Shown: piece by piece, positions 8,841 through 60,500 of the stretch
Numbering within the stretch: position 1 is the stretch's first letter
Layout of the letters: every line of letters begins with the position of its first letter
DNA from: Octopus sinensis
Taxonomy: Eukaryota
NCBI RefSeq assembly: GCF_006345805.1
Contig: NC_043008.1
Location: 33,294,001 to 33,358,000, forward strand
Direction of reading: 5' to 3'
Length of the DNA stretch: 64,000 nt
Notes under the pieces: generated by a model
What the model saw: only the letters and a program-made list of their open reading frames with translations
The model's database searches: none
What the model was told of the DNA's origin: nothing
Translations under genes and position numbers: made by a program

Positions 8841-11097
8841 AATTTCTTTATTGCCCACCGGGGGCCAAACATAGAAATGGACAGAGCAACTGATGGGATC
8901 AGTAATGCGGTATGATTTTACATAAAATGTGACTTTTAAAAATTAAATACAATATATAGAAAATCGAATGAAATTAACAATACAGAGACAACACAAATGA
9001 AGCGACGACCAGGCCACGCTCCGACCCCACAAGCCCCGATCTACCGCTGGTACCGTTTTTTATTCGTTCTTTTTTTTTTCCGTCTATTCACACGGTTCCT
9101 TGCACGCACAACTCTCGTGCAGCATGCTTCAATCTCTTTTGGAACGGACACTCCGACAGACACCTCTTCTCCAGCCACACCTTCCTTTTCAAATGAAAAG
9201 AAAAAATTTATCGTAAATTGTGGCCAGAGATAGTTGCCTGTCTTAATTCCTTTTATCCTAGTCTTCCATACTGCCTCTTTCGCTATTGCTACAACCGCGA
9301 GAAAACAATTCTTACCTTCGTTCGTTAAAACTCTCGGTGGGTCAGACTCATTCGACAGCTGTACTCTTATTCGCCGGACAACAAGTGTTCAGCATAAGCC
9401 CACATTTCAGATATCTCCGGACACTGAACAATAGCGTGAGGGACGTTTCTCTGTCACCCCGCATCTTGGACAGATCGGCGACTGACGCTTACCGTGTCTT
9501 GCGAGCTTATCCCAAACGGGCAAGGCATTGCCAGGTTAAGAACTTTTGGAAGTTGTCCAACGTTCTCAACCCGTATGTACGGTGAAAGAGACTGTCCAGC
9601 TGAATAAACCCGAGACCTAGTGTCGCCCCCAGGCCATCGTCGCATTGAGAATCTACCAACCCACTATTTAAAATCCATGTGGAACCCCCACCGCTGGCGT
9701 TGCCCGAGCGCCGGAATAGCAAGAGGGCCTTACGGCACTCTTTATGCCATTCACTCGACCTCGGTCTACGAGAACACCAGGCTTCCTGTTGGCAAAAACG
9801 TTTGAACTCGGGAAACATATGTCTGGCCAGCAGAGACCACAACCGTTCACTATCCAGGAGAATCCAGAGGTGGCTCAACCTCAACGCATGTCTGCGCATA
9901 ATTAACCAAGGCATCCCTAAACCTACCTTTAAAGGCTTTTGACAGCAGACAGAGCGTTTCAGAAGTGGCGACCTGCCCTTCCACAAATAGCGAAAGAGCT
10001 GTCTCTCCAACCTGATCAACCACGAATCCGGACAGGGCCCGACGGCCAGGCGGTAGGTAATGACTGATGCGATAAACACATTGGCCACCTCCGCCCTCCC
10101 TTTCAGGGATAGCCACCGCCAAGACCAAGTCTTGACTACTGCAACCACCCTGCTCAATACCTCCGTCCAGTTCTTCTCTATCTGGAAGCCTGGTTCAAAC
10201 CAAACTCCCAGCAACTTAACCGGTCCCTCCGTCCAGCGCCCAACAACGCTGTCTGAAGGCATCGACTTGCCAACCCAGGTGCCGAGCTGCAAGCCGACCG
10301 ACTTTTCCTGGTTAATCTTTGCTCCTGCCACCTCCTCGTAAGCCTCAATAGTCTTACCCACTCCACGCAGGCGTGCTACTGAGGTTGCGCTGACAGTGAT
10401 ATCATCCGCGTAAGCCGTAACAAACTCCTCTAGACCTGGTTTTCTCGGGATGCCACTCAACCTTCGCAGTAGGGGCTCGAGAGCCATCACATACAAAAGT
10501 GGTGAGAGCAGACATCCGTGACGAACTGAGCGTCTGATGCAGAACGGCTTCGAAAGGAAACCGTTCACCCGAACTATCGAGTCAATGATCTGCGGATAAA
10601 CCCATTCTGTTGCCTGTTCTCGTACACGTCAGCCAATAGATGCCCGAACAAGTCTGGTATACATTTATACAACTCGTGCGGAAGACCATCAAGTCCCGGC
10701 GACTTACCCACTTTACAGTCCACAGGTGTGATTGGCCCTTCGCAACACTCTGCATCCGACCCCGAGAGACACGACAGCCCGGCAAGAAAGTCCTCGAGGG
10801 CTCTCCCACCACCAGGACCGCCGTCACCCCCGAACAGCTGGGTGAAGTACTCCCGAAAGGCCTCACACATTTTCTCGGGTTCGTTTACCAAGATACCATT
10901 TTGATTCGTCAAAGACCGAATAGTGGAACTATTTCCTTGCCGAGCTTCCAGCACTCGGGCCCATCCAGTGGCCTTGATTCCTTCACTTCCCATCGCACGT
11001 AACTTAGCTCTGGCAATACTTCCCATGTTAAGCTTCAAGTTGCTGGTTTAACTCCAGTCCTTTTACCCTCGCTTGGTCCGCATTACCAGTCCTCCAG
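8841..11097 (-). mobile_element. Tx1-clade LINE copy B, non-inverted 3' part (degenerate ORF2 plus ~250-nt 3' UTR)
   Basis: ORFs 10574-11038 and 9507-10568 are collinear homologues of ORF2 at 54128 (GKSPGLDGLP, SVRHGCLLSPLLY, AYADD, KINQEKS, LSLKGRAEVAN). The C-terminal zinc-finger region at ~9230-9500 is frameshifted. Roughly 0.4 kb of RT is deleted at ~10575. Tail ends GGTGGGCAATAAAGAAATT at 8841. Confidence 0.92.
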
Positions 11098-11737
11098 GCG
11101 TAAGCCCCGATGTTTCCAATGTGGCCTACTGGGTCACATTAAAAAATATTGTAAAGAAGGTGAAGAAGAATCAGACGGTGAGGAGGAAGAAAGAGAGAAA
11201 GAAACTGAAGGAAAAATAAACAACAAAAGGAAAATGGAAGGCTCGAACCAGCAAGAGCAAAGTGAGCCGAGACAGAAAAAAAAAACAGCCAAGAGAGACA
11301 GACCGAGGATGGCGGACACGGTGACGAACAGAGGAATAGCTGCACTACACAGCAAAAACGAAGACTTAATGCGTAAAATAAAAACAAAAAAAATCAGCAA
11401 CTATGAATTTTACAAATTGAACAAAAAAAAAACGTATATCTTGTTTAACACATAGAAAATCGGTCTCAACATTGAGATTTGATTTTCATCAATCTATGTT
11501 TAGAGGCTTGCCATTTCCGACCCTAAGTCAAGAAAAGGTTGAGAGTCCCTCTCCACACGACGCCCCGATCTAAAAGGTAAGTCACGTCTATTCACATTGG
11601 TTGTATAAATGTCGTTGACCTGAGTTGGATGCAAGGGCGCTTCCTAAATGACATCAGGTCGAAAAATTTGGACGTAATTGTTGCAACAGAAATCCGGGTG
11701 AAGGGGCCAAGAAATCTACTCTTGTTATTTTCTGGGT
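11098..11737 (+). mobile_element. Inverted 5' segment of Tx1-B (ORF1 zinc knuckle to ORF2 start)
   Basis: Plus strand reads RKPRCFQCGLLGHIKKYC (CX2CX4HX4C, 11111-11152) in frame with ORF 11234-11455, then IHIGCINVVDLSWMQGRFLNDIRSKNLDVIVATEIRV from 11590, homologous to LRIGCLNVRGLGSPWKQGHLLNDLRFHDVDVAAISETRL of ORF2 at 54128. Confidence 0.88.
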
Positions 11738-12133
11738 CCTAGTAATAGTTCTCTCGATCGTAAGTGCTTGGTCAAAAGATTAGTATTCAGCACAAAAGTA
11801 CAAAATAGACAACAATCCCCAAGTGCAAATCGTGCAATGAGTTGACGGAACATAATTTTAAAATACGATTCTACATGCATAAAAATTCTTTATATTTCCA
11901 TCTGACCATTACACTTGATAGAAAGAGCGACCATCTCTCGTTCAAATCACATTATACATCTTCATGTATGTGTATGTGAACATGTGTGTATGTGTATATG
12001 AATGCATTAATCAACAACAGATTCTCTACATGGTACCCAAACCTATATTAAAATAGTAGTCAAATCTCTTTTAAATCATACTCAGTAGCATCAATATACT
12101 AATACACAATAAATCCAATGTACACACTTTGAC

Positions 12134-12137
<4 letters not shown>

Positions 12138-12182
<45 letters not shown>
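12138..12182. repeat. (CA)n microsatellite
   Basis: Direct reading. Confidence 0.95.
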
Positions 12183-12186
<4 letters not shown>

Positions 12187-12199
12187 AATTTGCACGAAT

Positions 12200-12740
12200 A
12201 CATATTAATAGTTTGTACTTCCCGAAACATGTTTACATGGGTAGTGTGCACAATTTTTGTTAATTTTCTTCAAACTCTTCTATTGTCTGAAATCGATGAC
12301 CTTTCGGAGTACATTTCAACTTCGGGAATAAAAACAAGTCTGTAAGTGACAGATCCGAAGAGTAGAGCGGCTAAGATGGGTGAGAATCATCTTGCTCTTT
12401 GTCAAAACCAAGGATAAGGAGTATCATGAGAGCACATGAGTTGTTGTGTTGCAGCATCATGTGAGATTTGCCCAGTCTTCAGGTTTCTTTGTCTGCAATA
12501 CCTCACCCAATATTCGCCTCAGGACTTCCAAGCAAGATTCTTTATTAGTCGTCTGATTACGAGAAACCAACTTAGGATAAAAGATGTCGTTCCAATCCTA
12601 AAAGACGATCAACATTTCTTTCATATTTGAGGAACATGACGTGCTTTTTTCTTTTTCTTTTTCTTTTCGGTGGTAGTGAAGGACTGCGACAATCGCTTTT
12701 TGTTTCAACATCGTAGCGTCAACACCCACGTTCCATCATT
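12200..12740 (-). pseudogene. Degenerate mariner (DD34D-type) transposase fragment
   Basis: Hand translation of the minus strand gives DGTWV..YDVETK (GDETW motif), KKARHV..NMKEMLIVF and PLYSSDLSLTDLFLFPKLKCTPKGHRFQTIEEFEEN (PYSPDLAPxDFxLF motif), with stops and frameshifts. TIRs not located. Confidence 0.8.
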
Positions 12741-14184: not shown

Positions 14185-14245
<61 letters not shown>

Positions 14246-14265
14246 ATCTTTCTTTCTTTCTGTCT
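14185..14265. repeat. (TTTC)n microsatellite
   Basis: Direct reading. Confidence 0.95.
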
Positions 14266-14415
14266 ATCTTTCTGTCTTTAATTCTTTTTTTCTTTCTTTT
14301 CAAACCATTAAAGAGACACTGAAAATATACCAGATTTAACCATAAAATGAAAAACTTGAACTTATTGCTGAAAGCTAAAATATAGGTTTCATTTTCTGTG
14401 TGTGTGTGTGTGTGT

Positions 14416-14455
<40 letters not shown>

Positions 14456-15059
14456 TGTGATATGGATATTGGCAGTAAAGAGAAAGATGTGCAATTGAAC
14501 GACACGCAACCAGAGATCAACATTTAAGTTTCAACACTCATATCATTATCTTTCTCCTTACTCAATTAAGGTGAAAAAAATCATGGGTTCAGAACCTTGT
14601 AAAGTGTATCACGCAGTGAATACCCTTAGTTATGCGTACAGAAGTGTTGATTGTGGAATGAAAGTTGACAAAAGAAAGGGGGAGAAAAGATTCAGATGGG
14701 TATTGATATATTAGCTTCAAATTTTGGCACAAGGCCAGCAAGATTGGGGAAGAGGTAAGTCGATTACATCGACCCTACTTTTCAACTAGTACTTACTTTT
14801 TTTTCTTCCCTTAATTATTTATACAACTTTCGGAGTGCCGTAGACTGAAAGATAAAAATTCTCCCAATATTTTTATGGGATTTTTTTTTTGAATCATGGT
14901 TGATTTTTTTTTTTCTTAAAAGGGAAAATTACTAATCTATTTAAAATAAAATAATGATCTTTATCATCTTAATCAAGAAGAGAAACAGAGAGATTATCTC
15001 TTTATAGACGAAGATCAGTTGCAATGGGAAGAGTCGAGTCTCATAAGAATGGAAAAACA

Positions 15060-16280: not shown

Positions 16281-16282
16281 TT

Positions 16283-17646: not shown

Positions 17647-18405
<759 letters not shown>

Positions 18406-18432
18406 CATATGTATGTATGTATGTACGTATGT

Positions 18433-19246
18433 AAAAAAAACTGATGAAACTGCAGGACAGTTTTATGATGATCTAACACAATTACTGAGGAAAGTACCAA
18501 TTTCTGACAAGCTGGTTATATTGGGAGATTTCAATGCAAGAGTTGAAAAGGAATGTGCTTTATGGCCTGTTTTAGGCCGACATGGGATTGGAAAATGCAA
18601 TAAAGATAGAGTAGCTCTTTTGACGTTTTGTACTGGGAATAGCCTGGTTGTCACCAACACTCTGTTTAAGCAGAAAAATAAATATAAAACCACCTGGATG
18701 CACCCAAGATCTAAGCACTGGCATCTTATAGATTATATTCTGATCAGAGAACGTGATATGAAAGACGTTTCTAGCGTTCGGACCATGCGAGGGGCAGAGA
18801 GCTGGACTGACCATCATCAAGTGCGTGGAAAAATAATGCCTAAAAATCGACAGTCTGGTCCTAAGGTACGCAAAAAGTTAAATGCTGCCAACTTTAAATT
18901 ACCAAGCAACTTGCAACGATTTCACGATGCTATAGAAAATATCAATCTTGACCCAAACAATCTATGGGAAGATTTCAAAACAAAAGTATTTCAGGCTGCA
19001 AGTTCGTCAGCGGGGTTTAAATCACATATGTCCAGTGGATGGTGCTCAGATAGATCAGTAGAAATTCACGATCTACTTTTAGAAAAACAAAACTTAGGCA
19101 ATGCACTTCTTTCTCAGTCCTTGAACCCCAACTCAAGCGAAGCTTACAGAAAGCTGAAAAGGAAAATGCAGACTGCTCTTAGGAAAATTAAACAGGAATG
19201 GTGGAATGATAGAGCCAAAGGGGCACAAGAAGCAGCTGATAGAAAG
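18433..19246 (+). mobile_element. RTE-clade LINE internal fragment (endonuclease C-half plus linker), open reading frame
   Basis: ORF 18413-19279: FYDDL..LL.KVP..DKLVILGDFNARV, GRHGIGKCN, TWMHPRSKHWHLIDYILIR, GAESWTDH (RTE/BovB-like EN motifs). Both ends abut GTATGT repeats. Confidence 0.9.
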
Positions 19247-19614
19247 TATGTATGCAGTGTCGCATGCATATCTGAATGACAGCTGTATTAACGTTAGCAT
19301 CCCACTGTCACTCCATATTTGTCACTTACACAACGCTGTTCTCCGCTTCCCTGATATCAGTCACATTCACTATGCCCCCACATTTCCCTCACACTAACAC
19401 TCTTTGCATCTTTCTCATTTTATCAAATAATAAGGGGCCTCACTATAAATTTTTATTGAAATCTAATTAGCCTATAATTGAATTGGATGTTAGTTTAACA
19501 TGTATGCATAGTTTCGTCAAGATAAGTCCACTGGTGTAGGTAGATGGTAACAGACAGATCGACAGACAGAAATTGCCAGTTATGTGTTTATGCATGTATG
19601 TGTGTGGGTGGGTG

Positions 19615-20326: not shown

Positions 20327-21470
20327 TGTTATGAGCCAGGCTGTCTTGTAGGGAAGGGCCGAAAGAGAGGGAGTAGACATGTCCTGTCAGAGGTGGGGCC
20401 TGTGGGTCCTATCGGAAGAGCCGCGGTGGACATGCGGAGACAGCGAAGCGCGAGCAGCCAGTTGGCGGCGGACAGCGCATGAGAGCAGGTGTGTCAGGCG
20501 GTACAGCGAAGGACAGAACACGTGGACGTTGTGAACGACTCTTTCCGGACCGACAGGTAAAACTACCGCAATTATCTCTTTGCTTCCGTCTTTTTCCTCC
20601 TTCACATCACAAGCTATTTCGGCTCAAAAAAAAGAAAAAAGAAAAAATGCTGGTTATGGTCCGTGTTTCGAACGAGACGGTTAGGCCATTTTGCGGCGAG
20701 GGAGACGTCACCGCTTGGCTGCAAAAAATTAAGTTGGTGGCAAGACTCTAAGGTATAGATGACCTAGCGACTTTCAAACCGTTGTACCTCAATGGATCGG
20801 CGTTGGCGCTATACTTGGAAATGGAGGAGAAGGACCAGTTAAGCGTAGAAAAAATAGAAGGCCAGCTGATGGAGGCTTTTACAGAAGGGCCATTTATGGC
20901 ATATGGTCAACTAGGGAAAGCGAAGTGGACGGGTGAAAAGGTCGATGTGTTTGCCAACAAAATCAGGAGATTGGCTAGACTCGTGGGATACTGGGACGAT
21001 GCATTGGAACAAACGGTTAAATTAACCTTTGTGACAGGATTTCCTGACCACGTATCGGTCGAACTGCAAAAGCTGCCGAATATTCACTCCATGGCGATGG
21101 GAGAGGTAATATCTTGGGCCAAAGCCATCGTCTCGTGTTGCAAGACGACACCTGCAGCAGCGACTGCAACAACGAGAGGGAGTCAAACAAAGAGCAGCGG
21201 AGAGGGGTCGAACAAGGAATGTGTGCAACTCTGCAAAGGACAATGTTTTCGGTGCCCCAGGTTTAGAGTAATTTGCTATCGATGCAGGCAAATAGGACAT
21301 GTCGCTAATGAATGCGTTCAAGGAAACGGTCTAAGGGAGACTACTGCGCTGGTAGTCATCCCGTCGAAAGAATAGAAGCGCGTATACAGTCGTTGCCAGT
21401 AATAGATTGTCGTAGTGAACGGAAAGTGTCACGAACCCTCGTGGACACGGGTTGCTCAACAACCCTAATG
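20327..21470 (+). mobile_element. Truncated Ty3/Gypsy LTR retrotransposon: candidate 5' LTR (20327-20611), gag and start of protease
   Basis: TG..CA-bounded GC-rich segment. Gag runs from ATG 20647 to TAG 21375 with one in-frame TAA (20749-20751) and a CYRCRQIGHVANEC zinc knuckle. Aspartic protease LVDTGCSTTL (DTG 21444-21452) lies in the -1 frame, with AGGAAAC (21321-21327) resembling a GGGAAAC slippery site. No RT/IN or 3' LTR seen. Confidence 0.8.
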
Positions 21471-22710
21471 ATTCCTTCACATCAGAACTTTATTTGTGTG
21501 TGTCTGACGATTTATGCAGCAATTGGTAGAGAAGGCATGCAGTTCTTGAGTTGGAAGGTCGCCAATATTTTAACGATGGAGTTGTAACGACAGTTGTTAA
21601 GGTGTTGGTTGTCAGTGTGCAAGATGGAAGAAGAAAAACGATTGAAGTTGTTAAGAAATATTTACTTACCGTTACTTTAATATTTGTAACACAACACCAC
21701 GACGGGTAGCTGTGTATAAGATATAAAAACAAGAGTTATCTTTTCTTGTATGTCGTTGCTTATTATGTTTGGTCAGCTGCTAGCTGCCTACCTAGGAATT
21801 AGAGGAAGATAGAGTAGATATTACTATCTGTTTCACATAGATTATTGCGCTTAGACAATACTGATGAAGCTTCAGACACGCTGGCTGGATGTACATAGCC
21901 TGTTTTATGCTCGAAGTACATATAAACATTAGGTGACCAGAGAAAACTGAAGAATTATATTTTCTAGATTGAAAAAAAAAAAAAGAGTTATTTCCCATGG
22001 ATTGTTGCATGTGATTCCAGAAATGGACGCAACATATTGTCAGAGTGAATATCTGTGCAGAAAGGTAGTAGCATCCGAATATGTTGCCTTTTGTGTTCAA
22101 GAAATGTGAATTTTTTTTAGAAGGAATTTATAACTGAAGTGTGGTTGTAAGCACAGACATAGCTGAGTGGTAAGAAGTTTGCTTTCCAACCACATGGTTT
22201 CAGGTTCAGTTCCACTGTGTGTTACCTTGGGCAAGTGTCTTTTGTAGCCTTGGGTTGATCTAATCCTTGTGAGTGGAATAGGTGGACGAAAACTGTAAGA
22301 AACCTGTCATATATTTATATGTATGTGTTTGAGTGTGTGCATGTCTTTTGTCATCTATCTTTTATTTGTTTCAATCATTAGACTGCAGTCATGAAGTGTT
22401 TTTAGTTGAATGAATCAACTCTAGGATTTTTTTTTAAGTCTGACACTTATTTTATTGGTTTCTTTTGCTAAACTGCTAAGTTATAAGGGCGTAAACACAT
22501 CAACACCAGTTGTCAAGTGGTGTTGGGGGATAAACACAGACATAAAGACACACACATATACACATAATGAGCTTCTTTCAGTTTCCATCTACCAAATTCA
22601 TTCACAAGGCTTTGGTCAACCCAAGACTATAGTAAAAGACACCTGCTCAAGGTGCAGTGCCATGCAGTGGGACTGAACCTGGAGCCATGTGATTGAGAAG
22701 CAAACTTCTT

Positions 22711-22945
22711 ATTTCTTTATTGCCCACAAGGGGCTAAACATAGAGGGGACAAACAAGGACAGACAAAAGGGATTAAGTCAATTACATCGACCCCAGTGTG
22801 TAACTGGTACTTACTTTATCAACCCCGAAAGGATGAAAGGCAAAGTTGACCTTGGCGGAATTTGAACTCAGAGCGTAATGGCACATGAAATACCACTAAG
22901 CATTTTGCCCGGCATGCTAACGTTTCTGTCAGCTCGCTGCCTTAA
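22711..22945 (-). mobile_element. SINE family A, Tx1-tail subfamily, nested in a family B SINE, with TSD
   Basis: AAGCAAACTTCTT (22698-22710) and AAGCAAACTTTTT (22946-22958) match 12/13. The host SINE B continues on both sides. Confidence 0.9.
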
Positions 22946-23269
22946 AAGCAAACTTTTTACTACACAGCAATGCCTGCACGTATTCTCTTTGCCTTGTCTT
23001 TAGATGACAGTTGGAAGTGAGTATCACTGTCATGTAAGTAGTGTCATTCATTTCCAATCTTCCATGAAAACATGTCTGGTCATGGGAAAATATCTTGCTA
23101 AGAAACAGGTGAGAGTTGATGATGATAGGAAGGGTATCTGGCTGTAGAAAATCCACCTCAACAAATTCTGTCTTTCCCATAGAAGCATGGAAAAGTGGAC
23201 GTTAAAACAATGATGGTGCTGTTAATATGACATTCGTCTTTACAAAATTAACCTTTAGAGCTCTATTCT

Positions 23270-23610: not shown

Positions 23611-25300
23611 GGTATAATGGCTTATTCAACCTAAAAATTTTCTCTTGTGATTGCCTCATGAAAAAGAGGGAACTGGAGATCCCACATCTTAATACAGACT
23701 CAAATACATGTTAATTAAGTTTGTTATCTCTTATTAGATTTGCTAAACATGTCTCTGCTACTTGGCTTTTCAGTTTAATACCTCTGTAGTCAATTTGTCT
23801 GCCTTGCTCCAGTTTGGAGTCTGGTACTTATTTTATTGATCTCTATAAAAGCTTACATCTTACTAAGAAATGTAGAATAATTTACAAATTTATATTATCC
23901 TTACATTCTTTACTTACTTGTTTCAGTTATTTGACTGTGGGCATGCTAGAGAACTGCCTTTAGTCGAGCAAATCAACCCTAGGACTTATTCTTTTTACGG
24001 GGATGTAAACACACCAGCATCGGTTGTCAAACCATGTTGGGGGGGACAAACACACACATATATATATACATATACTACAACGGGCTTCTTTCAGTTTCTA
24101 TCTACCAAATCCATTCACAAGGCTTTGGTCGGCCCTAGGCTATAGTAGAAGACACTTCCCAGGGTGCCACAAAGTGGGACTGAACCCAGGACCTTATCGT
24201 TGGTAAGCAAGCTACTTACCACACAGCCACTCCTGCGCCTTATGCAGAAATACTTATAATCTTCTCTATATCAATTCAACATTTAGCATATGTTCTATCA
24301 AAGCTAGTATATATCATACATACTTATGTGTACACACATATCCTTAAATCCTTAAAAATGTTTTAGCCTGCGGCCACATATACAAACATTTTTCAAAATT
24401 TCAAGAACATGTTTTAAGTATAGACATGGCTGTATGGTTAAGAAGTTTGCTTCAAAGTCACATGATTTCAGGTTCAGTCCCACTATGTGGTTAGTGGTTT
24501 CTACTATAGCCCTTGGCTGATCATGGCCTTATGAATGGTTTTGACTGACAGAAACTGAGAGAAGCCTATCATGTATATGTATGTATGTATGTGAATGTGT
24601 ATATGTTTGTGTCTTCTTATCTTCACATCATGTGATAGTAGTAAATTATTGTCACTATCATCTTAGCAGTGTCATTCATTTCCAATATTTTGCAAAAATA
24701 TGTCTGGCCATGAGGAAATATTACCTTGCTTAGTAACAGGTGGGGGTTGGCAACAGGAAGGACATCTATCCTTACAAAATCTATCTTGATAAACTATCTG
24801 ACCCATGCAAGCATGGAAAAATGGACATTAAAATGATGATGATGATGGTAATGTTGTTTTAGTTTAAGTATCATCAATTTCACAAAAGAAAAAAAAGACA
24901 TCAAATACATCAAAAATGAAATTAAAGGAACTAAAAAGAAACAAAAAAAAAACTCCTGAAATGAAATTCAAGAAAGAAAAGTCGAAAATATATTTGTCTT
25001 TTAATTATTTTTAAAATTTATTTTCCAAATCAATATGAAAAGATCTGTTATAAAGCAAAGCCCCAAAAATCATAAATTCCATCAATTGTGTTTTCATTGA
25101 AAACAAGCATTGCACACATTGAATTGTTCAACACCGATGCCAGTTCTGTTTTTTAAGTTTTTTCCCTAAATTTTCGTTTGTTATGCACACACAATTTACT
25201 TGTGCAATATATAAATATATGTGTGAGCATTTAAATGTATGCCTAACAATATTTCATAGCAACAAAAAATCAATAGTAATCATATATTAATCATAATAAT

Positions 25301-25516
25301 GGTTTAAAATTTTGCCACAAGGGCAGCCATTTTGTGGGGGAGGAGATGTGTCGATTACATCGACCCCAGTGTTTAACTGGTACTTAATTTATCGACCCGA
25401 AAGGGATGAAAGGCAAAGTCGACCTTGATGGAATTTGAACTCAGAACGTAAGGACAAACGAAATGCTGCTAAACATTTTGCCTGGCGTGCTATCAGTTCT
25501 GCCAGCTCGCCGCCTT
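25301..25516 (-). mobile_element. SINE family A, (ATT)-flanked subfamily (tail GGCCCTTGTGGCAAAATTTTAAACC)
   Basis: Full head and central domain, with AATAAT repeats on both sides. Similar minus-strand copies near 26330, 32690, 36115 and 39455. Confidence 0.85.
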
Positions 25517-26068: not shown

Positions 26069-26103
<35 letters not shown>

Positions 26104-26310
26104 TCCTTTCTACTAAAGGCACACGGCCTGAAATTTTTGGGGTAGGGGTACTACTTGATTACATTGACCCCAGTGTTTCACTGGTACTTAATTTATCGAC
26201 CTCAAAAGGATGAACGGCGAAGTCAACCTTGGTAGAATTTGAACTCAGAACATAAAGACAGGCTAAGCATTTTCCCTGGCATGCTAACAATTCTGCCAGC
26301 TCTCCACCTT
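26104..26310 (-). mobile_element. SINE family A, (ATT)-flanked subfamily (tail GTGCCTTTAGTAGAAAGGA)
   Basis: (AAT)n at 26069-26102 and 26311-26327 on either side. Similar minus-strand copies near 26545, 28070, 32392 and 36865. Confidence 0.85.
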
Positions 26311-27142
26311 AATAATAATAACAATAATGCTTCAAATTTAGGCTCAAGTCAGCAATCCTGAGGGGGATGGGGTTAGTCAGTACCCTCAATCCCAGTACTT
26401 GACCTTAAAAAGATAAAAGGCAAAGTTGACCAACAGGATTTAAACTCAAAATGTAAAGTGCTGGAATAAATAATGCAAAGCATTTTCTCAATGCTCTTAC
26501 AGTTCAATGAGCCTTGCTACCCTAATAAAAATATCAATAATAATCATTTCTACTATAGGTACAAAGTTTGAAATTTTCAAGTTTAAAGGGTCGAATTGAT
26601 TGCATCAACCGCAGGGCTCAACTGGTATGTATTTTATCATACCTGAAAGGATGAAAGGTAAAGTTGACCTCGGTGGAATTTGGTCTCAGAATGTAAGAAA
26701 TGAAGCATTTTTGTCTGGCATGCAAGCAGTTCTGCTGGCTTGCCCATCTTAATAATAACAACAATAATGATAAAACATTTTGAACAGGCATGAAACATCA
26801 GGTTTACTCGGTTGGAGAAATAGAAAAATTGAAGCATTTGTGCTTGTTATTTTTTTTTAATTTTTAATTTGTGTAACATCTATGACAACAAGAATATTTT
26901 TTTATTTTTCTTTTTACTTTTATACAAAGATATGAAGCCTGAGATTTTTTTTAATGATTATAAGTATGTATGGGGAGGGAGAATGAGAGGTTGTAATCAT
27001 CATGCCTCTTCAGAGAAGATTATTAATGTAAGTGAAGCAAAACGGCTTCAATTCAGAATTGAAATCACATCACAGACTTCGCTCGCTAAAAACATATTGT
27101 CACAGCATTACAAACAAAATAATTACACAGGAGGCAAGTAAA

Positions 27143-27870
<728 letters not shown>

Positions 27871-28339
27871 ATATTGAGAGAGAGAGATAAACATATGTAT
27901 ATCTGTGAGTATATATGTGTGTGTGTGTGTGTATCTTGAATTCAAGAAAGGAACAGAAAACAAAAGAGAAATGATTAGATAATCCAAATCAAAAATTTGA
28001 ACTAAAATTCTCATGATATCTAAAATGTCAAGTGAATAAGCTTGGTTAACCTATATCAATAAATAATAATTCTTTCTATCATAGGTACGAAACCTGAAAT
28101 CTTGGGGAAAAGGTCTTTTTGCTTATGTCATCCTCAGTACTTAACTGGGTCTTATTTAATCAATCCCAAAGGGATAAAAGGAGAAGTCTACCTCAGTGGA
28201 ATTTGAACCCACAGTATAAAGACAGTGGAAAAGCTGTACTAACAATTCTACCATCTCACTACCTTAATGATAATGAGCTTATTGTAGACAATGCACTATA
28301 ACTCATTCGTTTCTGAGATCAGCTTAAGGTCACTCTCCT

Positions 28340-50800: not shown

Positions 50801-51950
50801 ACAGGATGAATGTGCTAGCCTAGTGTGTTAGGGTGTTCAGCTTATGATCATAAGTTTGTGGGTTCAATTCTTTGACCAGGCAACCTGTTGCGTTCTTGAG
50901 GAAGGTACTTCATTTTAGTTTGCTCCAGTCTTCTGGACTTACCTGCTGTAGATGACAGATGAGGGTTCAGCAGCTTCTTGCTGAACAATCTGTACAAATG
51001 ATTTCCACAGTGGTCAAATGTTTGTACTGTACATTAGAGCACTTCCTCCATCAACTTGGCATTGCCTGTACAAGTGCTTGGTGTGCCACACATCATATGT
51101 TGAAGTGACTGCAGAGCAATGTGAGATGAAGTTCTCTACTCAAGCACGCACCACATTGCCCAATCCAGAATTTGAAACTACGATCTTATGACTGTGAGTG
51201 CGACACTAACCACAAGGCCACATGCCTCCACTAACAGTCTACTCTCCTGTAAATGAATACTAGCCAGATGCTAGTACAGCATTCTTTCTCTCTCTCTCTC
51301 TCTCCAGTTGTCATGTCTGAGATGTGCTGCTGGGTCAAGAGGGAGATGCCCAAGAGGGTGGCTATGTCTGTTCACAACTATCAAATTACTCAAAACAATT
51401 AGTGATAACATGGTTCATGTCACAAAGTCATACTCAGTCATGACTGATAGTTAACGGCTACACATATTTACAGCATACAAAAATAGATGTATAAAGATAT
51501 TGTCACTAAATTTAGCTCTATCAGAAATGAAAGATAGGATGTTATGGCTGGGATGCATTTGATTATAGATCAGGTCTAACTTCAGACTAAACAACAGCAC
51601 CTACAATATCCCTAGTCCCTTCAAATTTAAATGATTGCCTAAACTGAATGAGAGTTGGTGCTGCCATGAGCAGTGTTTTGTTCTTCTTCAAAGCTTGTGA
51701 TCTTCACTTGTTTCTATTCAACAATTCTTTAATTTACAATTCAAGGTTAAAATCCTCTTCACTAATGGTTAATGCATCTAGCTCTAGAGACTCATTAATC
51801 TAGAACATTTGGACTGTAAATGGTTTGTCATGTCCATAGTTTAGATACATTGTACACACTGTGAGAAAAGACATATCTATTTGAACTTAGGCTGCTGACA
51901 CATTGCTGCAAAAAGGTCTTTCTGTTACTGAAGTACGTTAGTATTATTAC

Positions 51951-51991
<41 letters not shown>

Positions 51992-52240
51992 CTTCCGACG
52001 CCGATGGACGTACGTGAATCAGCTCCGTGAATTTGACACCAATTTCATTGGAAATCTGTTGATAAGTTTTAATATTTTTTAATATTTTTGTAGCCAAACC
52101 GACCGGCTTCTTGCGGAGCTCGTCGGTTGGGCGAAATTTTGCCCCATTCGGGGTGAAATTACGTTTTAAAATTTTGAACATTTGACATTTTTCAACATTT
52201 TGAATATTACAACAAAAAAACATGGCTATGAAGCGAACAG

Positions 52241-54088
52241 TTGGCTGTTCCTTCCTTCAAGATACATTCCCTCCGCAAACACACAACTCGTCCAAAACAC
52301 CCACTTCACGCCTTAAAAGGCAACAAAGATCCTCCTTCCGAACCGGAGAGCATGCGCTCGGTTCAAAAGGAGAATGCAAGCCAGGACGTCGCGTTCGACG
52401 TAATTCTCGATTTTCCCCCTCTGCCTTCACCCAATGCTTTGGTACGGAAGGAGGAGGAAAAAAAAACAAATACAAAAATCATCACAAACATTGACACGGA
52501 GATAAAAGAAAAAACTTCCAACAATTTTGCTTCTGCTGCGAAGCAAATTTCGGAGGAAGTTAAGATAACTCTAGAAGATGTGAAAAGAGCGAAGGAGTTG
52601 TTGAGGAAGGATGGCAATGGCATCTTCCTCAATACTCCACAAGAGGTGATTGAAAGCACCAACAAGAAAACAATAATTTACAAAGTTTTCGACAGAAAAC
52701 TAAAAAGAATAACAAATGCCACACCCCAACAGTTGGAGATAGCTCTAAAGCCCATTTGGGCCCAAAAGAGCTACGTAACCAAGGGGAAGCGTTTTGGAAC
52801 CGTGGAGGTTCGCTTCCCAACAGAGGAGCTTGCAAGGGCGAACGCCATTTCGCCCTTGCAAACTGAGAATTTGTTACTAGTTCCGACCCACCTCGGGCGA
52901 AGAGTAACAAAAATAAAAATCGACCTCGCCCCCCCTGAGCTAGATATGTCATGGCTGGTGGCAGCTGTCCTCTATGATATAGAGGACACTACCACCATTC
53001 TAGATGTCAGGAGAGTGAGGGCGAAAAACTGGTTGGGGATGGGAGTGCTGCTTCTTGCGCAAATTCAGCAAGACAATATAAGTAAAGTCCCTGATTTCGT
53101 AAGTTTGCCGGACGGCACCAGGCTAAACGTTGCTGTGGAGGGGCGAAAGCCAAAATGTTTTCTCTGCAGCAGCGAAAGCCACTTAAAGAGGGACTGTCCC
53201 ATTCACAAAAAGAGGATGGAGGCTTTCAGCAAGAGGCAGCAGCAACAACAACAACAACAACAACACAAGCAACAACAACAGAAACAACAAAAACAGCAAG
53301 AAACACCAAAGGCTGCCACACCACCAACACCATCACCAACACCAGCACCAAGACGAACAACACCACCTCCAACAACAACAACCACCACCAAACCAACACC
53401 GACAACCACCACCAAACCAACACCGACACCAGTACCTCGAAGGTCGACAGCAGCGACATCAACAGTAACAGGAGCAGCGGCACCACCGATACCGGCGGAA
53501 CCAAAAACTTTTCGTCCTGCTACTGAAGCAGACCCCTCAACCATTCCTTTGCCGGATGAAGAGATCTCGGATTGTGCGAGCTCTGATGCCAACAAAGGAG
53601 AATGGAACATAGTGCCTCCAAAAAAGAAAAGGAGGAAAAAACAAAAAGATTTACAGGGTAAACACGAACAAATAGTACTTCCCAACATCAACAACAACAT
53701 CAACAACAACACACACTCACAACAACAAACAACAACAACAACACTTTCGACACCACTACTGCCACTACCACAGACACAAACAAACACAGACACAATTACA
53801 GACACGATTACAGCAGTGAATACAAGAAACCAGGAACTGGTTGAGTATTTGAAAAACAAAACAAGCACAAACATTACAGATTTCATAATACCTACACACA
53901 ACACACCACCAGCACACATTCTCACAATAAAAATAAACAAAACAGTTTACAACGAAATAAAACAAATATTCCCTAACGATGTGGGATCGTTAGGGAAAAG
54001 TTTCTCTCAGAAACTTTACAAAAATATTATTGAAGCACCCGTGCAAAAGCACAAGGGAGCCACCCCCACCACCAACAACAGTAAGTAG
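52241..54088 (+). CDS. Tx1 ORF1 (nucleic-acid-binding protein, CCHC zinc knuckle, polyQ and P/T-rich tail)
   Basis: 615-aa ORF with VEGRKPKCFLCSSESHLKRDC (CX2CX4HX4C), directly upstream of the EN-RT ORF. The upstream ATG at 52222 is out of frame. Confidence 0.9.
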   Translation: MAVPSFKIHSLRKHTTRPKHPLHALKGNKDPPSEPESMRSVQKENASQDVAFDVILDFPPLPSPNALVRKEEEKKTNTKIITNIDTEIKEKTSNNFASAAKQISEEVKITLEDVKRAKELLRKDGNGIFLNTPQEVIESTNKKTIIYKVFDRKLKRITNATPQQLEIALKPIWAQKSYVTKGKRFGTVEVRFPTEELARANAISPLQTENLLLVPTHLGRRVTKIKIDLAPPELDMSWLVAAVLYDIEDTTTILDVRRVRAKNWLGMGVLLLAQIQQDNISKVPDFVSLPDGTRLNVAVEGRKPKCFLCSSESHLKRDCPIHKKRMEAFSKRQQQQQQQQQHKQQQQKQQKQQETPKAATPPTPSPTPAPRRTTPPPTTTTTTKPTPTTTTKPTPTPVPRRSTAATSTVTGAAAPPIPAEPKTFRPATEADPSTIPLPDEEISDCASSDANKGEWNIVPPKKKRRKKQKDLQGKHEQIVLPNINNNINNNTHSQQQTTTTTLSTPLLPLPQTQTNTDTITDTITAVNTRNQELVEYLKNKTSTNITDFIIPTHNTPPAHILTIKINKTVYNEIKQIFPNDVGSLGKSFSQKLYKNIIEAPVQKHKGATPTTNNSK

Positions 54089-54127
54089 AGCCTTTTTTCT
54101 CCTTTTTTTTCCCCTAACTTTTGAAAC

Positions 54128-57100
54128 ATGGCAAATCTTAGAATCGGTTGCTTGAATGTGAGAGGCCTCGGGTCACCTTGGAAACAGGGTCACCTGTTAA
54201 ACGACCTGAGGTTTCATGATGTGGATGTAGCAGCCATCAGTGAAACCAGGCTCTCCGACCCGCAGGAACTCGCAGCCCTTTTCGGCGGATACGAGATATT
54301 TCTATCTCCGTGTAGGCCGGGAGCGGGCGGTGGTGGTACTGCGGTGTTGTTTCGGAAGGGCCTGGACCTGAAAATAAGGACAGTCTTCTTGGATCCGGAA
54401 GGTAAGTTGGTGGTCCTCGACGTCGACGGTAGTGACGGCGGTGCTTTCAGACTGCTGGCTGCCTACGCTCCGACAGGAGCAGGGCAGTCGGATTATTTCA
54501 AACGTCTGGAAGTTTTCCTGGGAACGTCACGCACTCTAGTACTAGTTGGGGATTGGAACGCTGTCTTAGACGAACGTTTCGATCGGGTGGGCAGGGGAGC
54601 GTCTGATAGGAGAGGGGGAGGGTGCAAGAGCCTCGCCAACCTACTCGGCCACTTTCAGCTGTCCGACAGGTTTCGACTAGACAACCCGAATGTGCCAATG
54701 TGGACTTGGACAAACCGCATCGGGTCGTCTAGATCGTACTTAGATAGAGTGTTTTGTAGGCCAGCGGATAAGGACAGCGTAGGGTGTCCACAATTCCACC
54801 TAGTCGAATATACGGACCACAAATTAGTGATCTGTACGGTCGACTTAGATAGGCTACATAGACAGGGACCCGGCTACTGGAAGCTGAACGCGTCGTTAAC
54901 GGCGTGCAAAGCTTACAGAGACCGGATTAGTTTACTAGTTAAGCGGGCGCTCACGGGGGCAATCATCAACAACAACTGGTGGTTTGCCCTCAAGAGAGCA
55001 ATTAGAGTAGAGTCGATTAGGTATAGTAAGACTCTAGCTATTGAACGTAGGAAGAGAGAGCGGGATTTAGTTAAGAAACTAGACGAGGCTCTTGACACTG
55101 GCATCGCGACCGACGTGTTGGCGGCAAGGTTGGCCCTCGACCAACACTTCGACGCCAAACACGAAGGCTGCGTTGTCAGAGCTAAGGCACGTTCGCTAAG
55201 CGGGGAGGGGACTAGAGCCGCTCGATGGGCCCGCGTGGCGGAGGCGAAGCGAGGCAACAGAGCAACCATTCGGTCTTTGGTGGACCAGAACGGGCGCGAG
55301 GTTACCCAACCGAAGCAGATGTGTACGGTGCTTCAGCGGCACTTTGCTCAACTGTTTGGGACGAGCGGTGGAACGGACACCAACGGTGCAGACTTCGGTG
55401 TGTACCTGGACGGACTGCCGCAACTCTCGGACAGCGAGGCAGAGTGCTGCGAAGGACCGATATCTGCCTGGGAAGTACAGGAAGCGATGAAGAGTTGCAC
55501 GAGAGGTAGATCGCCGGGTTTGGATGGTCTGCCCTACGAGCTTTACTTTTCAATGCCAGACTTGTTTGCGGACCTGTTGGCAAACGTCTACTGCAACTGG
55601 CAGCAAAACGGGAGAATTCCTGCTTTTGTCTGTCGAGGGGTGGTGGCTTTGCTAAAGAAGGACCCAAACAAGGGGGACGTTATAGGGAATTTCCGGCCCA
55701 TCACTCTGCTCAATGCAGAGTTGAAGATTTTGGCCAAGGTGCTAGCCAAGAGATTGGCCCTTGTCGTGGACAAGCTGGTCGGCGAGACGCAGACATGCAC
55801 CGTGCCGACCAGGTCGATACACGACAACCTCCATCTCATGCGCTACATCATAGAGAGGGTGGGTAATGACGCTGGCGCGGGTGGGGCTTTGATCAACTTG
55901 GATCAGAGTAAAGCCTTCGATAGGGTCGACCATCGGTACCTGGCAGCTGTCCTCAGGGCAGCCGACTTCGGTCCAGTCTTCCGCGGGTGGATCGCTGCTT
56001 TATACAGCAACATCTGCTCAGTGATACGGGTGAACGGTCACCTTTCGGAACCGTTCGACATCTCGCGTTCGGTCCGCCAAGGATGCCCTCTCTCCTCCCT
56101 CTTGTACATTTTGACTCTCGAGCCATTACTGCGCAAGTTGGAGGCTTTGAGGGGTATCCCGCGCGATCTAGGAGGCGGAAACAGCGTGTCTGCTTATGCC
56201 GACGACGTCACCGTGGTGGTGTCGAGCCACAGGCACATTGGCCTGATTGGCGAGACGCTAAACCAGTACGAAGCGGTGACAGGGGCAAAGATTAACGCGG
56301 AAAAGTCTGTGGGCTTGCAACTGGGCACCTGGAGGGGCAAGCCCATGCCGTCCAACAGCGTCGTAGGGCGCTGGACAGACGGACCCGTTAAACTGCTCGG
56401 GGTCTGGTTCGGTCCGGACCTCCAGGTGGATAAGAACTGGGAAGAGGTGACGAGCAGGGTGGCACGTCTCACCCAGAAATGGGCCGAGAGGAAGCTGTCC
56501 CTGAAAGGTCGAGCGGAGGTGGCGAATGCGTACATCGCATCCGTCATCTATTACCGCTTGACCGTCGTCCCTTGTCCCGACCGCTGGTTGGCCAAGCTGG
56601 TACGTCTGCTCTTCGACTTTTTGTGGAAGGGTCAGGTGCCACTGGTCAGGCGATCCATCTGCTGTCAACGACCGCTGAACGGAGGCCTTGGAATGCCGTG
56701 GTTACTGTTGCGCAGACATGCGCTCAGGCTGCGGCATCTCAAGCGCTTCCTAGACGGTGAACAGGTGTGGTCGTCTTTTGTCAGACGCGATTTTCCGCAG
56801 CTCGTCTCTTTGACGGAACTGCAGACCTGGATCAAACGTAGACCGAGAAAGGGCGCTTGGCACCTCGAGTGCCGTCAAGCCCTCTCCGCCCTCCGCCAGG
56901 CGGGCAATGCGGTCGGTTACAGCTCCACTCTAGCGTTCTATAGAGGGTTAGTGGAGGAAAAATGCGACGACGTTCTCGGGGAAACTCTAGGCGTTGAAGA
57001 TGACGAACTGTGCGGTCTGTTCGGGAGGACTTTTGGGCCGGGGCCGATGGATAATTTCCAGAGGTCTCTCGCTTGGCAGTGCTACCGAGGGGCTCTGCCT

Positions 57101-57561
57101 GTTCGAGATAAACTCTACCGGCACGGAAGTGCCGTCAGCCGGGCCTGCCCGAGGTGTTGCCAGGACGACGAACCGTTCTGCACGCACTCGTTCAGTGCCC
57201 GAGTATTGCTGAAATATGGGTTTATGTCGAACAGCTACTGTCACGTGTAGGACGGATCCGACTATCGGCCGAATCCATAGTGAAGATTGCCCCGCCGACT
57301 TCCTTTAACAAGGAGGGCGAGGCCGTTTTCTTGTGCCTAGTGGCTGTGGCGAAAGAGGTCGTGTGGTGGACTCGTTTGAAAGGGCTAAAGACAGACACTT
57401 TCCTCTTTGGTCAAGGCCTCATCAACTTTTTCAAGTTTCACTTGAAAAGGAAGAGGAGGTTAGAGAGGAAAGTGCTGTCCGATAGCAAGTTTTATGAAAG
57501 GTGGGTGAATTGTGCGAGACTGGCCTGTATAAATGGACCAGTTCTCAGGTTTCGCCTGTGA
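54128..57561 (+). CDS. Tx1 ORF2: APE endonuclease, reverse transcriptase and C-terminal zinc finger; single -1 frameshift at 57171-57172
   Basis: EN motifs LNVRG, SETR, YAP, GDWN, SYLDR, TDH. RT motifs SPGLDG, NFRPITLLN, DQSKAFDRV, RQGCPLS, YADD (56195-56206). Restoring one A in GAC GAC GA(A) ACC joins CPRC..DETVLHALVQC to the 57154-57561 frame. Confidence 0.95.
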
Positions 57562-60500
57562 TTTCAAAGAAAAAGGTAATGTAAAAGGAGAAGAAAGGGG
57601 ACTCTCTACACCCCCTTTTTTTTGACCAGGCTCCCGTTGGCTTTTGTAGGGTTTTTTCCACCAGGAACCTTTCGAAACGTCTCCCCCTTTTGGGAGTCTT
57701 TCATTGTTGAATTTTATAAGTTGTTATAAAGATTTTTACTCGATGTTTTTAAAAAAAACGGCAAAACCCTTTGTAACCTTTCGTCCTGTCTTGTCCCTTT
57801 ATGTAATCATGCGTGTCAGCCCTTGTGGCCAATAAAAAAGAATTGATTATTATTATTATTATTATTATTATCATTGGAAGGGTAAGATCTCTCATCTCAT
57901 CATCAAAAAGAAAAAAATAAGTAGATAAATAAAAAACCTAGACAAATTGTTAGTAATGCTTCAAATGTTCAACATTTAATGCACTCAGGTATTTTTCTGG
58001 CTTTCTCCTATGTTATAAAGAGCATCTTTTGCTCTTCTAGCTGTGTATATCACATTATATTCAATCATTTTAGTTTGTGTTGACATCTCAGTACATTATT
58101 CCTTTGAACGCAGAATGTAGACCTATCTGCTCGAAATTCTATTACTGTCAACTATGGAAAGTGGTTTTACTCCTCAATTTTTCAGATTTTCTAAATTTTT
58201 TCCTATTTCATGAAACATCTCTTTACAGAGCAAAAATCAAATACTTTTAATGGTGGATATGAGAGCTGTAGATACAACTTTCATATCCACCGAAATAAGC
58301 ATTGCAGAAACAGAAAATATCAATTCTATTTTTTGGTGGATAATTTATATCATTACAAGAATGACCATGAAATTTAATTACACAGTCAAATGTTTAATGT
58401 TTGTTTCTTATAACTTCATATAATTGCATAATTTCTAAAAAAAGATATTAAATTCTAGTATTCTAAACTGAAAACTTAGTGACAATTTAGTTTTAGCATA
58501 TTAAATGAGCAAAAAAGGAAAAAGTCACAGAAAACGTTCAATAAATGACATTAGATAAAATATTTCAATCAATATCTGAAATATTTTTTTCACTTGTATG
58601 TGAAAATATATTCTGTGTACAGGTTATGTATAACCAGTGAGTAAGTGATTTAAAATAATACTTGTTTATTTGTACTAACTATTATTTATGATGTATAAAT
58701 GAAATGAAACATTTTCCCTCTATCCAAAATTGTGACTTTTTCCCCCGTGTGACTTCATTTCTGTTCACTATTCACTCAGGTCAACGTGTTATTATTATAA
58801 GTTTCAATTTAATTTCGGTCACACTAACTTAGTGACACTAACAGGTTACATACTAAGCCAGATGTTGCATCTTCAATAAACAATGATAATCAATAAAAAA
58901 AAATACAGATTTTACATTGTTGTTTATCAATATTATTTTATACAGTTTGGAAAAATTGATCTCTTTTATTAACAAAACTTACAAGCAATGAATTAAAACT
59001 AAACCTGACAACTAAAACTTGGCTGTTTAGCAAAAACACCAATCAACTTAATTACTTTTTTATAATTTTAATATGGAATAAACCCATTATTTTTCAACAT
59101 AATTGCAGTAACTATAGCTCTTTAACACTTAACCAAAAATATTAGAAAAAACATTGGAAATTCATCTAATTTTCATATATGTATATTTTTTTAGTTTGGT
59201 TCTTGGTTTTAATAAATGCCACTCAACAATTTATGACTTGCTTAATAAAAACAACTGGGAACATTTACATGTCTCTCCCTAGAAAATATTTCACAGTTCT
59301 GATCTCCTGATAACAATGATGCCTTCAGCTCACTATTAGAGAATTCAGCACTATTATTTTCATTTCTAAATTTAAAGGGTTGCTTTGTGCATCATTCAAC
59401 AGTGGACAAACACTTATTTCTTTTTCCTTGCTAATATCTTTAAATTTCATTGATGTATAACCAACTAAGAAAATATAACTGCAGCTGTGACATACCTTAA
59501 GTGCATAAGTAACAGATGAACATAATAACATAATGCATTATTCTTTTATCTGTTAGTCACACATAATATGTATGCTGTTTATATCATTTGCTCACTTGAA
59601 ACAATACACCTAGTTCTGAGTGTGTATGTATGTGTGTATATGTATATATGTATGTGTGTGTGTATATATATATATATATGTATATAATTAAAAGAAATAA
59701 CCTCTATTAAGTAATTCAATAGTGAAAGACTTTATCTATATCATATAGAAAAATTTAAATATACAATAATAAATATTATTCAAAAAATCACTAAATTAAA
59801 TAAACATTAAAACGACCACGCATTTTGTGACTATATCTTTAAATCAATAATAATAAGATTGATACTATTAAAATTAATTTGATTTAAAAATATAGCCACT
59901 CTTCAGGTCTAAACAATAAAATAAATGTATGTATATTAACATAATAAACAAATATAGAAATATACGTATCTTAACTATAAATAAGCGAATAAAATATAAC
60001 GATATTAATGAAAAATAAAATTATAACGTATCTTATTGAAGAATTCCAGCTAACTGAAATATTAAACGTTATACTTAGAACCTAGTGTTGCTAAGAAATT
60101 TATCATGTGAAAACATGATGTAAATAATAACTATAGGATAAATAGATAGAAAAATGTATTTTAGCTATGAAAATAACAATATGTATTTTAGCTGTGAAAA
60201 TAAGAAATAAACTAGATGTAATATACCATTTACTGGAAAATTTCTAAAATCTCAATAATTTAAAACTAAAATACGTAAAATACATAAAATAAATTAAATT
60301 TCGATAACTTAATCTATATTTATCAATTTATTTATTTAATTTATAAACACCCTGGTTTAATCTTAATCCAATTATGTAATATACACAACATAATCTAGTG
60401 TATATTACACACCAGCATCGACTGACAAGCGATGGTGGGGGGACAAACACACACACACATATATATAAATATATATACACAACAGGCTTCTTTCAGTTTC

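Follow-up and report, generated by a model that had tools for sequence, protein, structure and literature searches.

A common 3′ terminal hairpin in L1/Tx1-like LINEs and a SINE superfamily of Octopus sinensis supports a LINE-SINE partnership

Introduction

Two L1/Tx1-like long interspersed nuclear elements (LINEs) of Octopus sinensis and the short interspersed nuclear elements (SINEs) found in the same genomic region carry the same small hairpin at their 3′ ends, and the best explanation, which we consider probable, is that the protein encoded by open reading frame (ORF) 2 of Tx1-like LINEs mobilises the SINEs through this common module. The elements lie in a stretch of 64,000 nucleotides (contig NC_043008.1, positions 33,294,001 to 33,358,000), hereafter the window, which has a G+C content of 36% and contains ~25 SINE copies or fragments; positions below are those of the window, with the strand in brackets. 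The sharing of a 3′ tail between a SINE and its partner LINE is an old and well-supported rule, to which the L1 superfamily is usually taught to be the poly(A)-recognising exception. A common tail combined with common ATT microsatellites is the classic signature of SINEs that use the copying machinery of a LINE. The label "L1/Tx1-like" used here for both LINEs comes from architecture and homology and should be read as such, not as the outcome of a reverse transcriptase (RT) phylogeny. An original prediction made on this stretch had proposed that Tx1 LINEs share a terminal stem-loop with one SINE subfamily and mobilise it; the observation is confirmed by our analysis and the partnership drawn from it is supported.

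Results

A common 3′ tail in LINEs and SINEs

The first LINE, Tx1-A, is full length (51991-57845, +), and the second, Tx1-B, is truncated at its 5′ end (8842-11023, -). The terminal 34-mer of Tx1-B (8842-8875, -), TCTATGTTTGGCCCCCGGTGGGCAATAAAGAAAT, matches the end of a type I SINE (22711-22744, -) at 31 of 34 positions, and no match with three or fewer mismatches was obtained in the 100 shuffles against which chance was judged. Both tails can form the predicted GCCC/GGGC stem with its loop of 5 nt, each reading GCCC-N5-GGGC immediately before AATAAAG; in Tx1-B the hairpin is GCCC-CCGGT-GGGC (8865-8853) and the element ends AATAAAGAAATT. Tx1-A does end, as had been noted, with the CTTGT loop seen in the SINEs (...gtcAGCC-CTTGT-GGCCaataaaaaagaattg, 57818-57845), and its hairpin, (A)GCC-CTTGT-GGC(C) at 57818-57830 (+), is followed by AATAAAAAAGAATTG and scores 26.9 bits (R1) in the covariance-model scan. 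In the LINE tails, the hairpin precedes an AATAAA. In local alignments the type I SINE tail reached z=18.7 against Tx1-B, z=10 against L002, a LINE copy from outside the window (61 columns, from CTGTCCTTG), and z=6 against Tx1-A, and the three LINEs have 3′ untranslated regions (UTRs) that are colinear through several blocks as far as the terminus. Within the window, the SINE tail has no match in any other LINE fragment, in agreement with the original prediction.

Could this similarity be a historical accident, in which template switching or recombination placed a SINE fragment on Tx1-B, or a LINE tail on a SINE, and left copies that are now dead relics? Tx1-B is truncated and broken, with a mutated loop, it is abutted on its 3′ side by SINE fragments, and the similarity among the type I SINE copies is no more than 87-91%. 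Against this, the tail of Tx1-B is colinear with both the Tx1-A and the L002 3′ UTR, lacks 11 nt of the SINE tail and has a CCGGT loop that differs from that of the SINEs, and therefore represents the LINE's own end, as claimed earlier, without an inserted piece of SINE. Together, the tail of L002 and the alignments of the SINE tail to L002, Tx1-B and Tx1-A indicate that the tail belongs to the LINE families and is no local accident. Compensatory versions of the hairpin are also found in every SINE subfamily of the window and in distant LINE families (see below), ORF2 of Tx1-A is intact, and L1-Tx1 is listed among the recently active LINEs of octopus (PMC13282606). An accidental origin is thus highly improbable.

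Single-sequence folding returned the hairpin for Tx1-B and for the SINE copy at 8423; for the copies ending at 3042 and 22711 the minimum-energy fold of the 63-nt piece is a different pairing. An extended outer stem, UCUAUGUU with AAUAAAGA, was also considered and rejected: it forms in Tx1-B and SINE 8423 but is A/U-rich and not general.

The hairpin in all SINE tail subfamilies

All 13 SINE tails of the window, which represent four tail subfamilies, and both LINE tails have a 4-bp G+C-rich stem closed by a CTTGT-type pentaloop. The partnership had been proposed for a single SINE subfamily; the partnership itself is supported, and its extent was drawn too narrowly, the hairpin being present in every SINE subfamily of the window. 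Type I comprises the copies at 2822-3042 (+; hairpin 3018-3030, ending AAAGAAATA without poly(A)), 8423-8655 (-; reference copy "Y", GCCC-CTTGT-GGGT at 8447-8435) and 22711-22943 (-; GCCC-CTTGT-GGGC at 22734-22722). These are the three tail-bearing copies previously listed as 2821, 8423 and 22711 and they all stand (2822-3042, +; 8655-8423, -; 22943-22711, -), except that 2821 marks the 5′ edge of its copy and not the tail. The type I tail of the window has its CTTGT hairpin flanked by TCTATGT and AATAAAGA.

Type II tails read AGGC-CTTGT-GCCT, with the variant AGGT-TTCGT-ACCT. They end the SINEs at 26069-26310 (-; AGGC-CGTGT-GCCT at 26129-26117, then (ATT)11 at 26101-26069, with ATT repeats on the 5′ side as well), 32382-32505 (-; 5′-truncated, AGGC-CTTGT-GCCT at 32418-32406, then (ATT)4), 28075-28231 (-; AGGT-TTCGT-ACCT at 28095-28083, where the innermost stem pair is T-A versus C-G in the other type II copies) and 26549-26744 (-; a decayed AAAC-TTTGT-ACCT at 26569-26557, flanked by ATT repeats), as well as SINE fragment "X" at 8665-8840 (-; GGGT-CTTGT-GCCT at 8698-8686, then ATT-rich). 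Type III (TGGC-CTTGT-GCCA) is present as one full-length SINE at 39458-39667 (-; hairpin 39478-39466) and as two 3′ parts at 14717-14798 (-; 14737-14725) and 37523-37609 (-; 37543-37531), and type IV (TGCC-CTTGT-GGCA) as the SINE at 25290-25516 (-; 25325-25313), which has ATT repeats on both sides. A further SINE at 32690-32888 (-) carries (T)GGGC-CTTGT-ACCA at 32710-32698, with one pair broken, followed by ATTATTATT.

The covariation that the original prediction called for is present in these stems. An ungapped alignment of 27 columns was made from 3 LINE and 13 SINE tails (16 rows), and pairing was judged against 500 shuffles and controls in which the partner strand was slid. Paired stem cells amount to 90.6% versus 60.1% in the shuffles (0/500), double changes occur at all four pairs, and the covariation score is 0.754 compared with 0.235 for shuffles and ≤0.20 for slid controls. 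The real evidence for covariation is the set of six distinct, perfectly paired stems (GCCC/GGGC, GGCC/GGCC, AGGC/GCCT, AGGT/ACCT, TGCC/GGCA and TGGC/GCCA) around a conserved loop. CTTGT hairpins with a 4-bp stem number 14 in the window versus 3.1 expected, and 9 of them are located at SINE 3′ ends. A covariance model built from the 16 rows was run on the window and on the outside LINE contigs; in the window only 15 tails score at least 21 bits, with the next match at 14.6 bits.

LINE ends outside the window

LINE 3′ ends beyond the window also carry the tail, in line with the original prediction: it was found in L002 and in LINE families that are only 43-44% identical. L002, on a host-contaminated metagenome contig, is 80% identical to Tx1-A at the amino acid level; its end reads ...ccgGGCC-CTTGT-GGCCaataaaagaaatc, with ...ctgtccttgccttttgtatcgtccttaatgtttccgGGCC running up to the CTTGT loop, and after it comes a long (ATT)n. 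In prokaryotic genome contigs, a protein-guided scan detected a distant LINE that is arranged in tandem (period 6.39 kb) and shares 43-44% identity with the Tx1-A/L002 family. Several LINE subfamilies of CAXXMW01 end ...cccttcccctccccaaaaacttcaAGGC-CT(T/C)GT-GCCT (stem AGGC/GCCT), and this module, a C-rich stretch, AAAA and AGGC-CTYGT-GCCT, is the tail module of the type II SINEs of the window. The covariance model had not been trained on the CAXXMW01 LINEs and nevertheless picks exactly these ends. About 30 nt past the first hairpin, the CAXXMW01 tails (L016-L067) have a second one, of the type tCTGTGTA-cac-TACACAGa followed by AATAAAG, for which six compensatory stem versions were seen.

These contigs also bear on whether the SINEs might be driven by a LINE of another clade that lies outside the window and has a better-matching tail. 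Such a LINE could escape a sample of only 64 kb, the window has further LINE-like ORFs (for example the endonuclease-like one at 18413-19279), and a close LINE counterpart of tail types II-IV was found only in foreign contigs. These foreign contigs, however, encode relatives of Tx1-A and Tx1-B and not another clade, the tails match no other sequence in the window, and the (ATT)n target is common to the SINEs, Tx1-A and L002, so that a driver from another clade is scarcely probable.

Several other searches gave no tail. The full-length relatives L011 and L013 (~42% identity) have unrelated 3′ ends, L012 offers too little 3′ sequence, and L001, L003 and L004 end short of the terminus. The tail pattern CCCTTGTGGSYARTAAAN{0,3}GAAWT had six matches in JGI metagenome contigs, all of them chance matches in prokaryotic DNA of 48-57% G+C. 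The SINE core was absent from bacterial and archaeal genome contigs and from viral contigs, and the protein-guided scan for LINE relatives found none in viral contigs. Two database entries touched by this work are misnamed. CAXXMW01, entered as "MAG: uncultured Arenicella sp." (L014-L067), is actually mis-binned eukaryotic DNA with head-to-tail arrays of several subfamilies of Tx1-like LINEs, and P0022, named a Herbaspirillum "zinc-binding domain-containing protein", is a fragment of a LINE ORF2.

(ATT)n targets and the lack of poly(A)

Tx1-A is flanked on both sides by (ATT)n, with 48 nt directly 5′ (51943-51990, +), which form half of the target, and 30 nt directly 3′ (57846-57875, +), which are either the other half or tail repeats of the element itself. 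In L002 the repeat is seen on the 3′ side. This is the pattern of target-specific insertion, as judged from only two LINE copies, and Tx1-B lies outside (ATT)n. SINE types II-IV have (ATT)n at their 3′ ends, and ATTATT is found within 30 nt 5′ of 5/6 type II-IV SINEs versus 2.7% of random 30-nt windows. Three SINEs are arrayed head to tail with ATT repeats between them (26744-26069), 26549-26744 being the first member, and four or five of the 10 (ATT) runs of at least four units in the window adjoin these retroposons. The presence of Tx1-A, L002 and SINE subfamilies II-IV within (ATT)n points to a common target. The type I SINEs have no poly(A) and are flanked by target-site duplications (TSDs) of 14-16 bp. 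The copy at 2822-3042 has a perfect 16-bp TSD, TATATTTAGGGTTAGC, at 2806-2821 and 3043-3058, the latter right after AAAGAAATA, and SINE 22711 has one of ~14 bp, A(A/G)AAGTTTGCTT(T/C)T. The TSD at 2806-2821/3043-3058 contains TTAGGGTTAG, nearly two telomere-type TTAGGG units, and GGGGT motifs occur nearby.

The shared microsatellites permit a different account of recognition, in which Tx1-like LINEs do mobilise the SINEs but select them through pairing of the terminal (AUU)n/GAAAU with an ATT-type target, a specificity set by the target as in other site-specific elements, while the hairpin serves RNA stability, 3′-end formation or the spacing of AAUAAA. The common (ATT)n flanks link the elements no less strongly than the hairpin does, the partnership between Tx1 and SINEU was inferred from target preference alone (Kojima 2015, PMC4494074), and in the LINE tails the hairpin is followed by AATAAA. 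Yet type I SINEs and Tx1-B retain the hairpin without (ATT)n, and SINE types II-IV retain both hairpin and loop without AATAAA; for transcripts of RNA polymerase III such as those of SINEs, there is no known use of a poly(A) signal of RNA polymerase II. Loop and stem pairing are moreover kept across LINE families that are 43-44% identical, the rest of whose 3′ UTRs cannot be aligned. Recognition by target pairing in place of the hairpin is therefore unlikely in our judgment.

Architecture of the LINEs

Tx1-A has the L1-type layout, ORF1 followed by an ORF2 with an APE-type endonuclease, an RT and a C-terminal zinc-binding domain. ORF1 (52241-54088, +) contains a CCHC knuckle and stays open over 615 codons; the two ATGs upstream are in other frames, and an in-frame Met first appears at codon 38. 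ORF2 (54128-57250, +) encodes 1040 amino acids with the endonuclease, an RT with YADD and a weak zf-RVT (Pfam Exo_endo_phos, RVT_1). The suggestion that this ORF2 would need repair has to be corrected, as it is open and complete through endonuclease, RT and zf-RVT. Its closest solved structure is human L1 ORF2p (E 1.6e-50, versus ~1e-23 for R2), and the 3′ UTR is ~595 nt. The G+C content of Tx1-A is 50% (56% in ORF2), well set off from that of the window, and ORF1 has long low-complexity Q-rich and T/P-rich stretches.

Tx1-B covers amino acids 347-1038 of ORF2 relative to Tx1-A, and its 3′ UTR is ~535 nt. The two ORF2 proteins share only 55% amino acid identity, thus Tx1-B is a second, different family. 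Head-to-head with its truncated 5′ end lies an inverted Tx1-like piece (11100-11736, +) that consists of the end of an ORF1 with a CCHC knuckle and amino acids 1-54 of ORF2. A twin-priming inversion would fit this topology, but ~290 codons are absent between the two pieces. Two more retroelement-like ORFs, 18413-19279 (+), with weak endonuclease matches (Exo_endo_phos_2), and 20782-21375 (+), with a CCHC zinc knuckle, probably belong to another LINE family.

The SINE superfamily and its junctions

The SINEs of the window form one superfamily, in which the head contains motifs resembling A and B boxes, the core is conserved and the LINE-derived tails are exchangeable. They are short, non-coding, present in multiple copies and flanked by TSDs. 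The A-box-like TGGCAGAATTG and B-box-like GAGTTCAAATTCC of the head were recognised by eye; ARAGORN found no tRNA in the head and Rfam gave no tRNA match up to E 5. Rfam also gave no snRNA match in the window, and a U1/U2-derived head as in SINEU was not found.

One junction is seen at two places. In both elements with a type I tail that run into SINE DNA, Tx1-B (ending ...AAAGAAATT) and SINE Y (ending ...AAAGAAATA), the terminus is followed directly by SINE position 50 (GGTATTT), and the two adjoining fragments, X after Tx1-B and "Z" (8293-8422, -) directly after Y, belong to different SINE subfamilies with an identical start at position 50. The SINE head may contain a preferred insertion site, reverse transcription may stop at a fixed point, or templates may have been switched between RNAs. 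The insertion sites of the other two type I copies have (T/G)TTT 3-5 nt into the TSD. An insertion of Tx1-B into a SINE whose head would lie upstream was considered and rejected, as there is no SINE head or TSD in 10.9-16 kb.

SINE 22711 is nested in a member of another repeat family (22590-22710 and 22944-23100), which has its own B-box-like motif, GGTTCAGTCCC, and related copies at 24633-24730 and 40565-40666; these copies are too diverged for an empty-site comparison. Similar tRNA-like motifs are located near 879 and at 50820-51200.

Discussion

LINEs and SINEs with homologous 3′ ends, a stem-loop that varies by compensatory changes and a defined or short-repeat end without poly(A) have, judged by sequence, the attributes of a stringent partnership. 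The common RNA module would consist of a 4-bp G+C-rich stem, a C(U/C)(U/C)GU pentaloop (consensus CUUGU), an A-rich stretch of the AAUAAAGAAAU type and mostly (AUU)n. A Tx1-like ORF2 protein, with its endonuclease and RT, would bind the hairpin either of its own RNA in cis or, in trans, of RNA polymerase III transcripts of SINEs that mimic the tail. The endonuclease would then nick the target, which for SINE types II-IV and the Tx1-A family is (ATT)n; there the RNA could pair through its (AUU)n end with the nicked (AAT)n strand. Target-primed reverse transcription would begin just 3′ of the hairpin, and such a start would leave copies without poly(A). The type I SINEs are likely driven by a Tx1-B-like family whose CTTGT loop is intact; Tx1-A is an unlikely driver because its stem and target differ.

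Several points weigh against this explanation as a whole. The sample is small, one 64-kb window and a few outside loci, with 13 SINE and 2 LINE tails in the window, 1 close LINE end outside it and 1 outside set from related families. We used the loop as the anchor of the tail alignment, and 9 of the 16 rows were supplied by a scan in which pairing was a requirement; members of one subfamily share their descent, and the number of independent events is therefore ~six stems and not 16. Single-sequence folding gave z values of -0.5 to -1.7, which are not significant. The hairpin of Tx1-A has only 3 clean pairs, the loop of the Tx1-B copy is mutated to CCGGT, and the AATAAA of the LINE tails may be a mere polyadenylation signal. 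The window has no LINE whose full tail closely matches types II-IV. Finally, binding of the protein to the hairpin, mobilisation in trans and pairing of (AUU)n with the target are inferred from sequence.

A broader reading can be put forward tentatively. A whole old Tx1-like subclade, with ORF2 identity down to 43%, may use the CUUGU hairpin for template recognition, and in this genome each subfamily of the dominant SINE may have exchanged its tail repeatedly among these LINE families and kept the hairpin. The system may also seed its own (ATT)n targets: if (ATT)n is where the machinery inserts, and if every new copy brings further (ATT)n with it, new targets would keep arising. We would sooner doubt than accept this reading as a whole.

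The closest precedents each share part of this system. UnaL2/UnaSINE1 of eel and ZfL2 of zebrafish, of the L2 clade, are cited as the experimentally proven stringent partnership (Kajikawa & Okada 2002, as cited in PMC4494074), and their tail recognition has been described (PMC4176376). As in the window, UnaSINE1 copies the 3′ tail of its LINE, with a short stem-loop, a conserved loop, short terminal repeats and no poly(A). Unlike the LINEs described here, UnaL2 has a single ORF without an L1-like ORF1 and is not targeted to a microsatellite; its loop is another one, its repeat is (TGTAA)n and not (ATT)n, and mobilisation is proven there and inferred here.

The view, adopted in the original prediction, that the L1 group recognises poly(A) is too simple, although it holds as the usual teaching, since stringent L1-clade pairs with 3′ stem-loops (PMC3472496) and a Tx1-driven class of SINEs (PMC4494074) have been published. 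The former are LINE1-1_ZM with ZmSINE2/3 in maize/sorghum and L1-1_CR with SINEX-3_CR in Chlamydomonas (Ohshima 2012, PMC3472496), in which LINE and SINE of the L1 group likewise have a common 3′ end and a stem-loop with compensatory stem changes and conserved loop bases. These pairs differ from those of the window in being plant and algal and outside the Tx1 group, with poly(A) ends, no microsatellite target, a UCU loop and CGAG as 3′ flank. The latter are the SINEU elements of crocodilians, for which Tx1-Mar was proposed as the driver from target preference and shared 5′ heads (Kojima 2015, PMC4494074). They resemble our SINEs in that a Tx1-group driver is deduced from the same target preference; their heads, however, derive from U1/U2 snRNA, their target is a Mariner transposon, and no common 3′ hairpin was argued.

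Microsatellite targets are known for the Tx1 group, where Kibi, Koshi and crocodilian families target (TC)n, (TTC)n, (TTCC)n and (TTTC)n (Kojima & Fujiwara 2004, as cited in PMC4494074). As with Tx1-A and L002 in (ATT)n, these are LINEs of the group within a specific microsatellite, which flanks them on both sides; the repeat unit is different, and we found no partner SINE or 3′ hairpin reported for these families. A list of 58 pairs published up to 2013 gives no Tx1 pair in the passages where Tx1 is named (PMC3747384). The low G+C content of the window (36%), its SINE density and its L1/Tx1-like LINEs agree with published descriptions of octopus genomes (PMC13282606, PMC8967140). Our literature search, which lay outside Repbase, found no earlier report of a tail partnership between Tx1 and a SINE, nor of the tail or partner of an octopus SINE.

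If the partnership holds, it would be, as far as we found, the first case of a Tx1-group LINE and a SINE with a common structured 3′ tail. The published L1 exceptions are plant and algal, and for the Tx1 group the argument has so far been one of target preference only, as in SINEU. It would name the LINEs that drive a very abundant SINE superfamily and tie both to (ATT)n microsatellites, and a well-defined RNA element of only 13 nt with natural compensatory variants would lend itself to studying template choice by an L1-type ORF2 protein. Self-seeding, if true, would account for the head-to-tail SINE arrays and for a substantial share of the (ATT)n microsatellites, and would provide a concrete mechanism for the large lineage-specific expansion of SINEs reported in octopus genomes.

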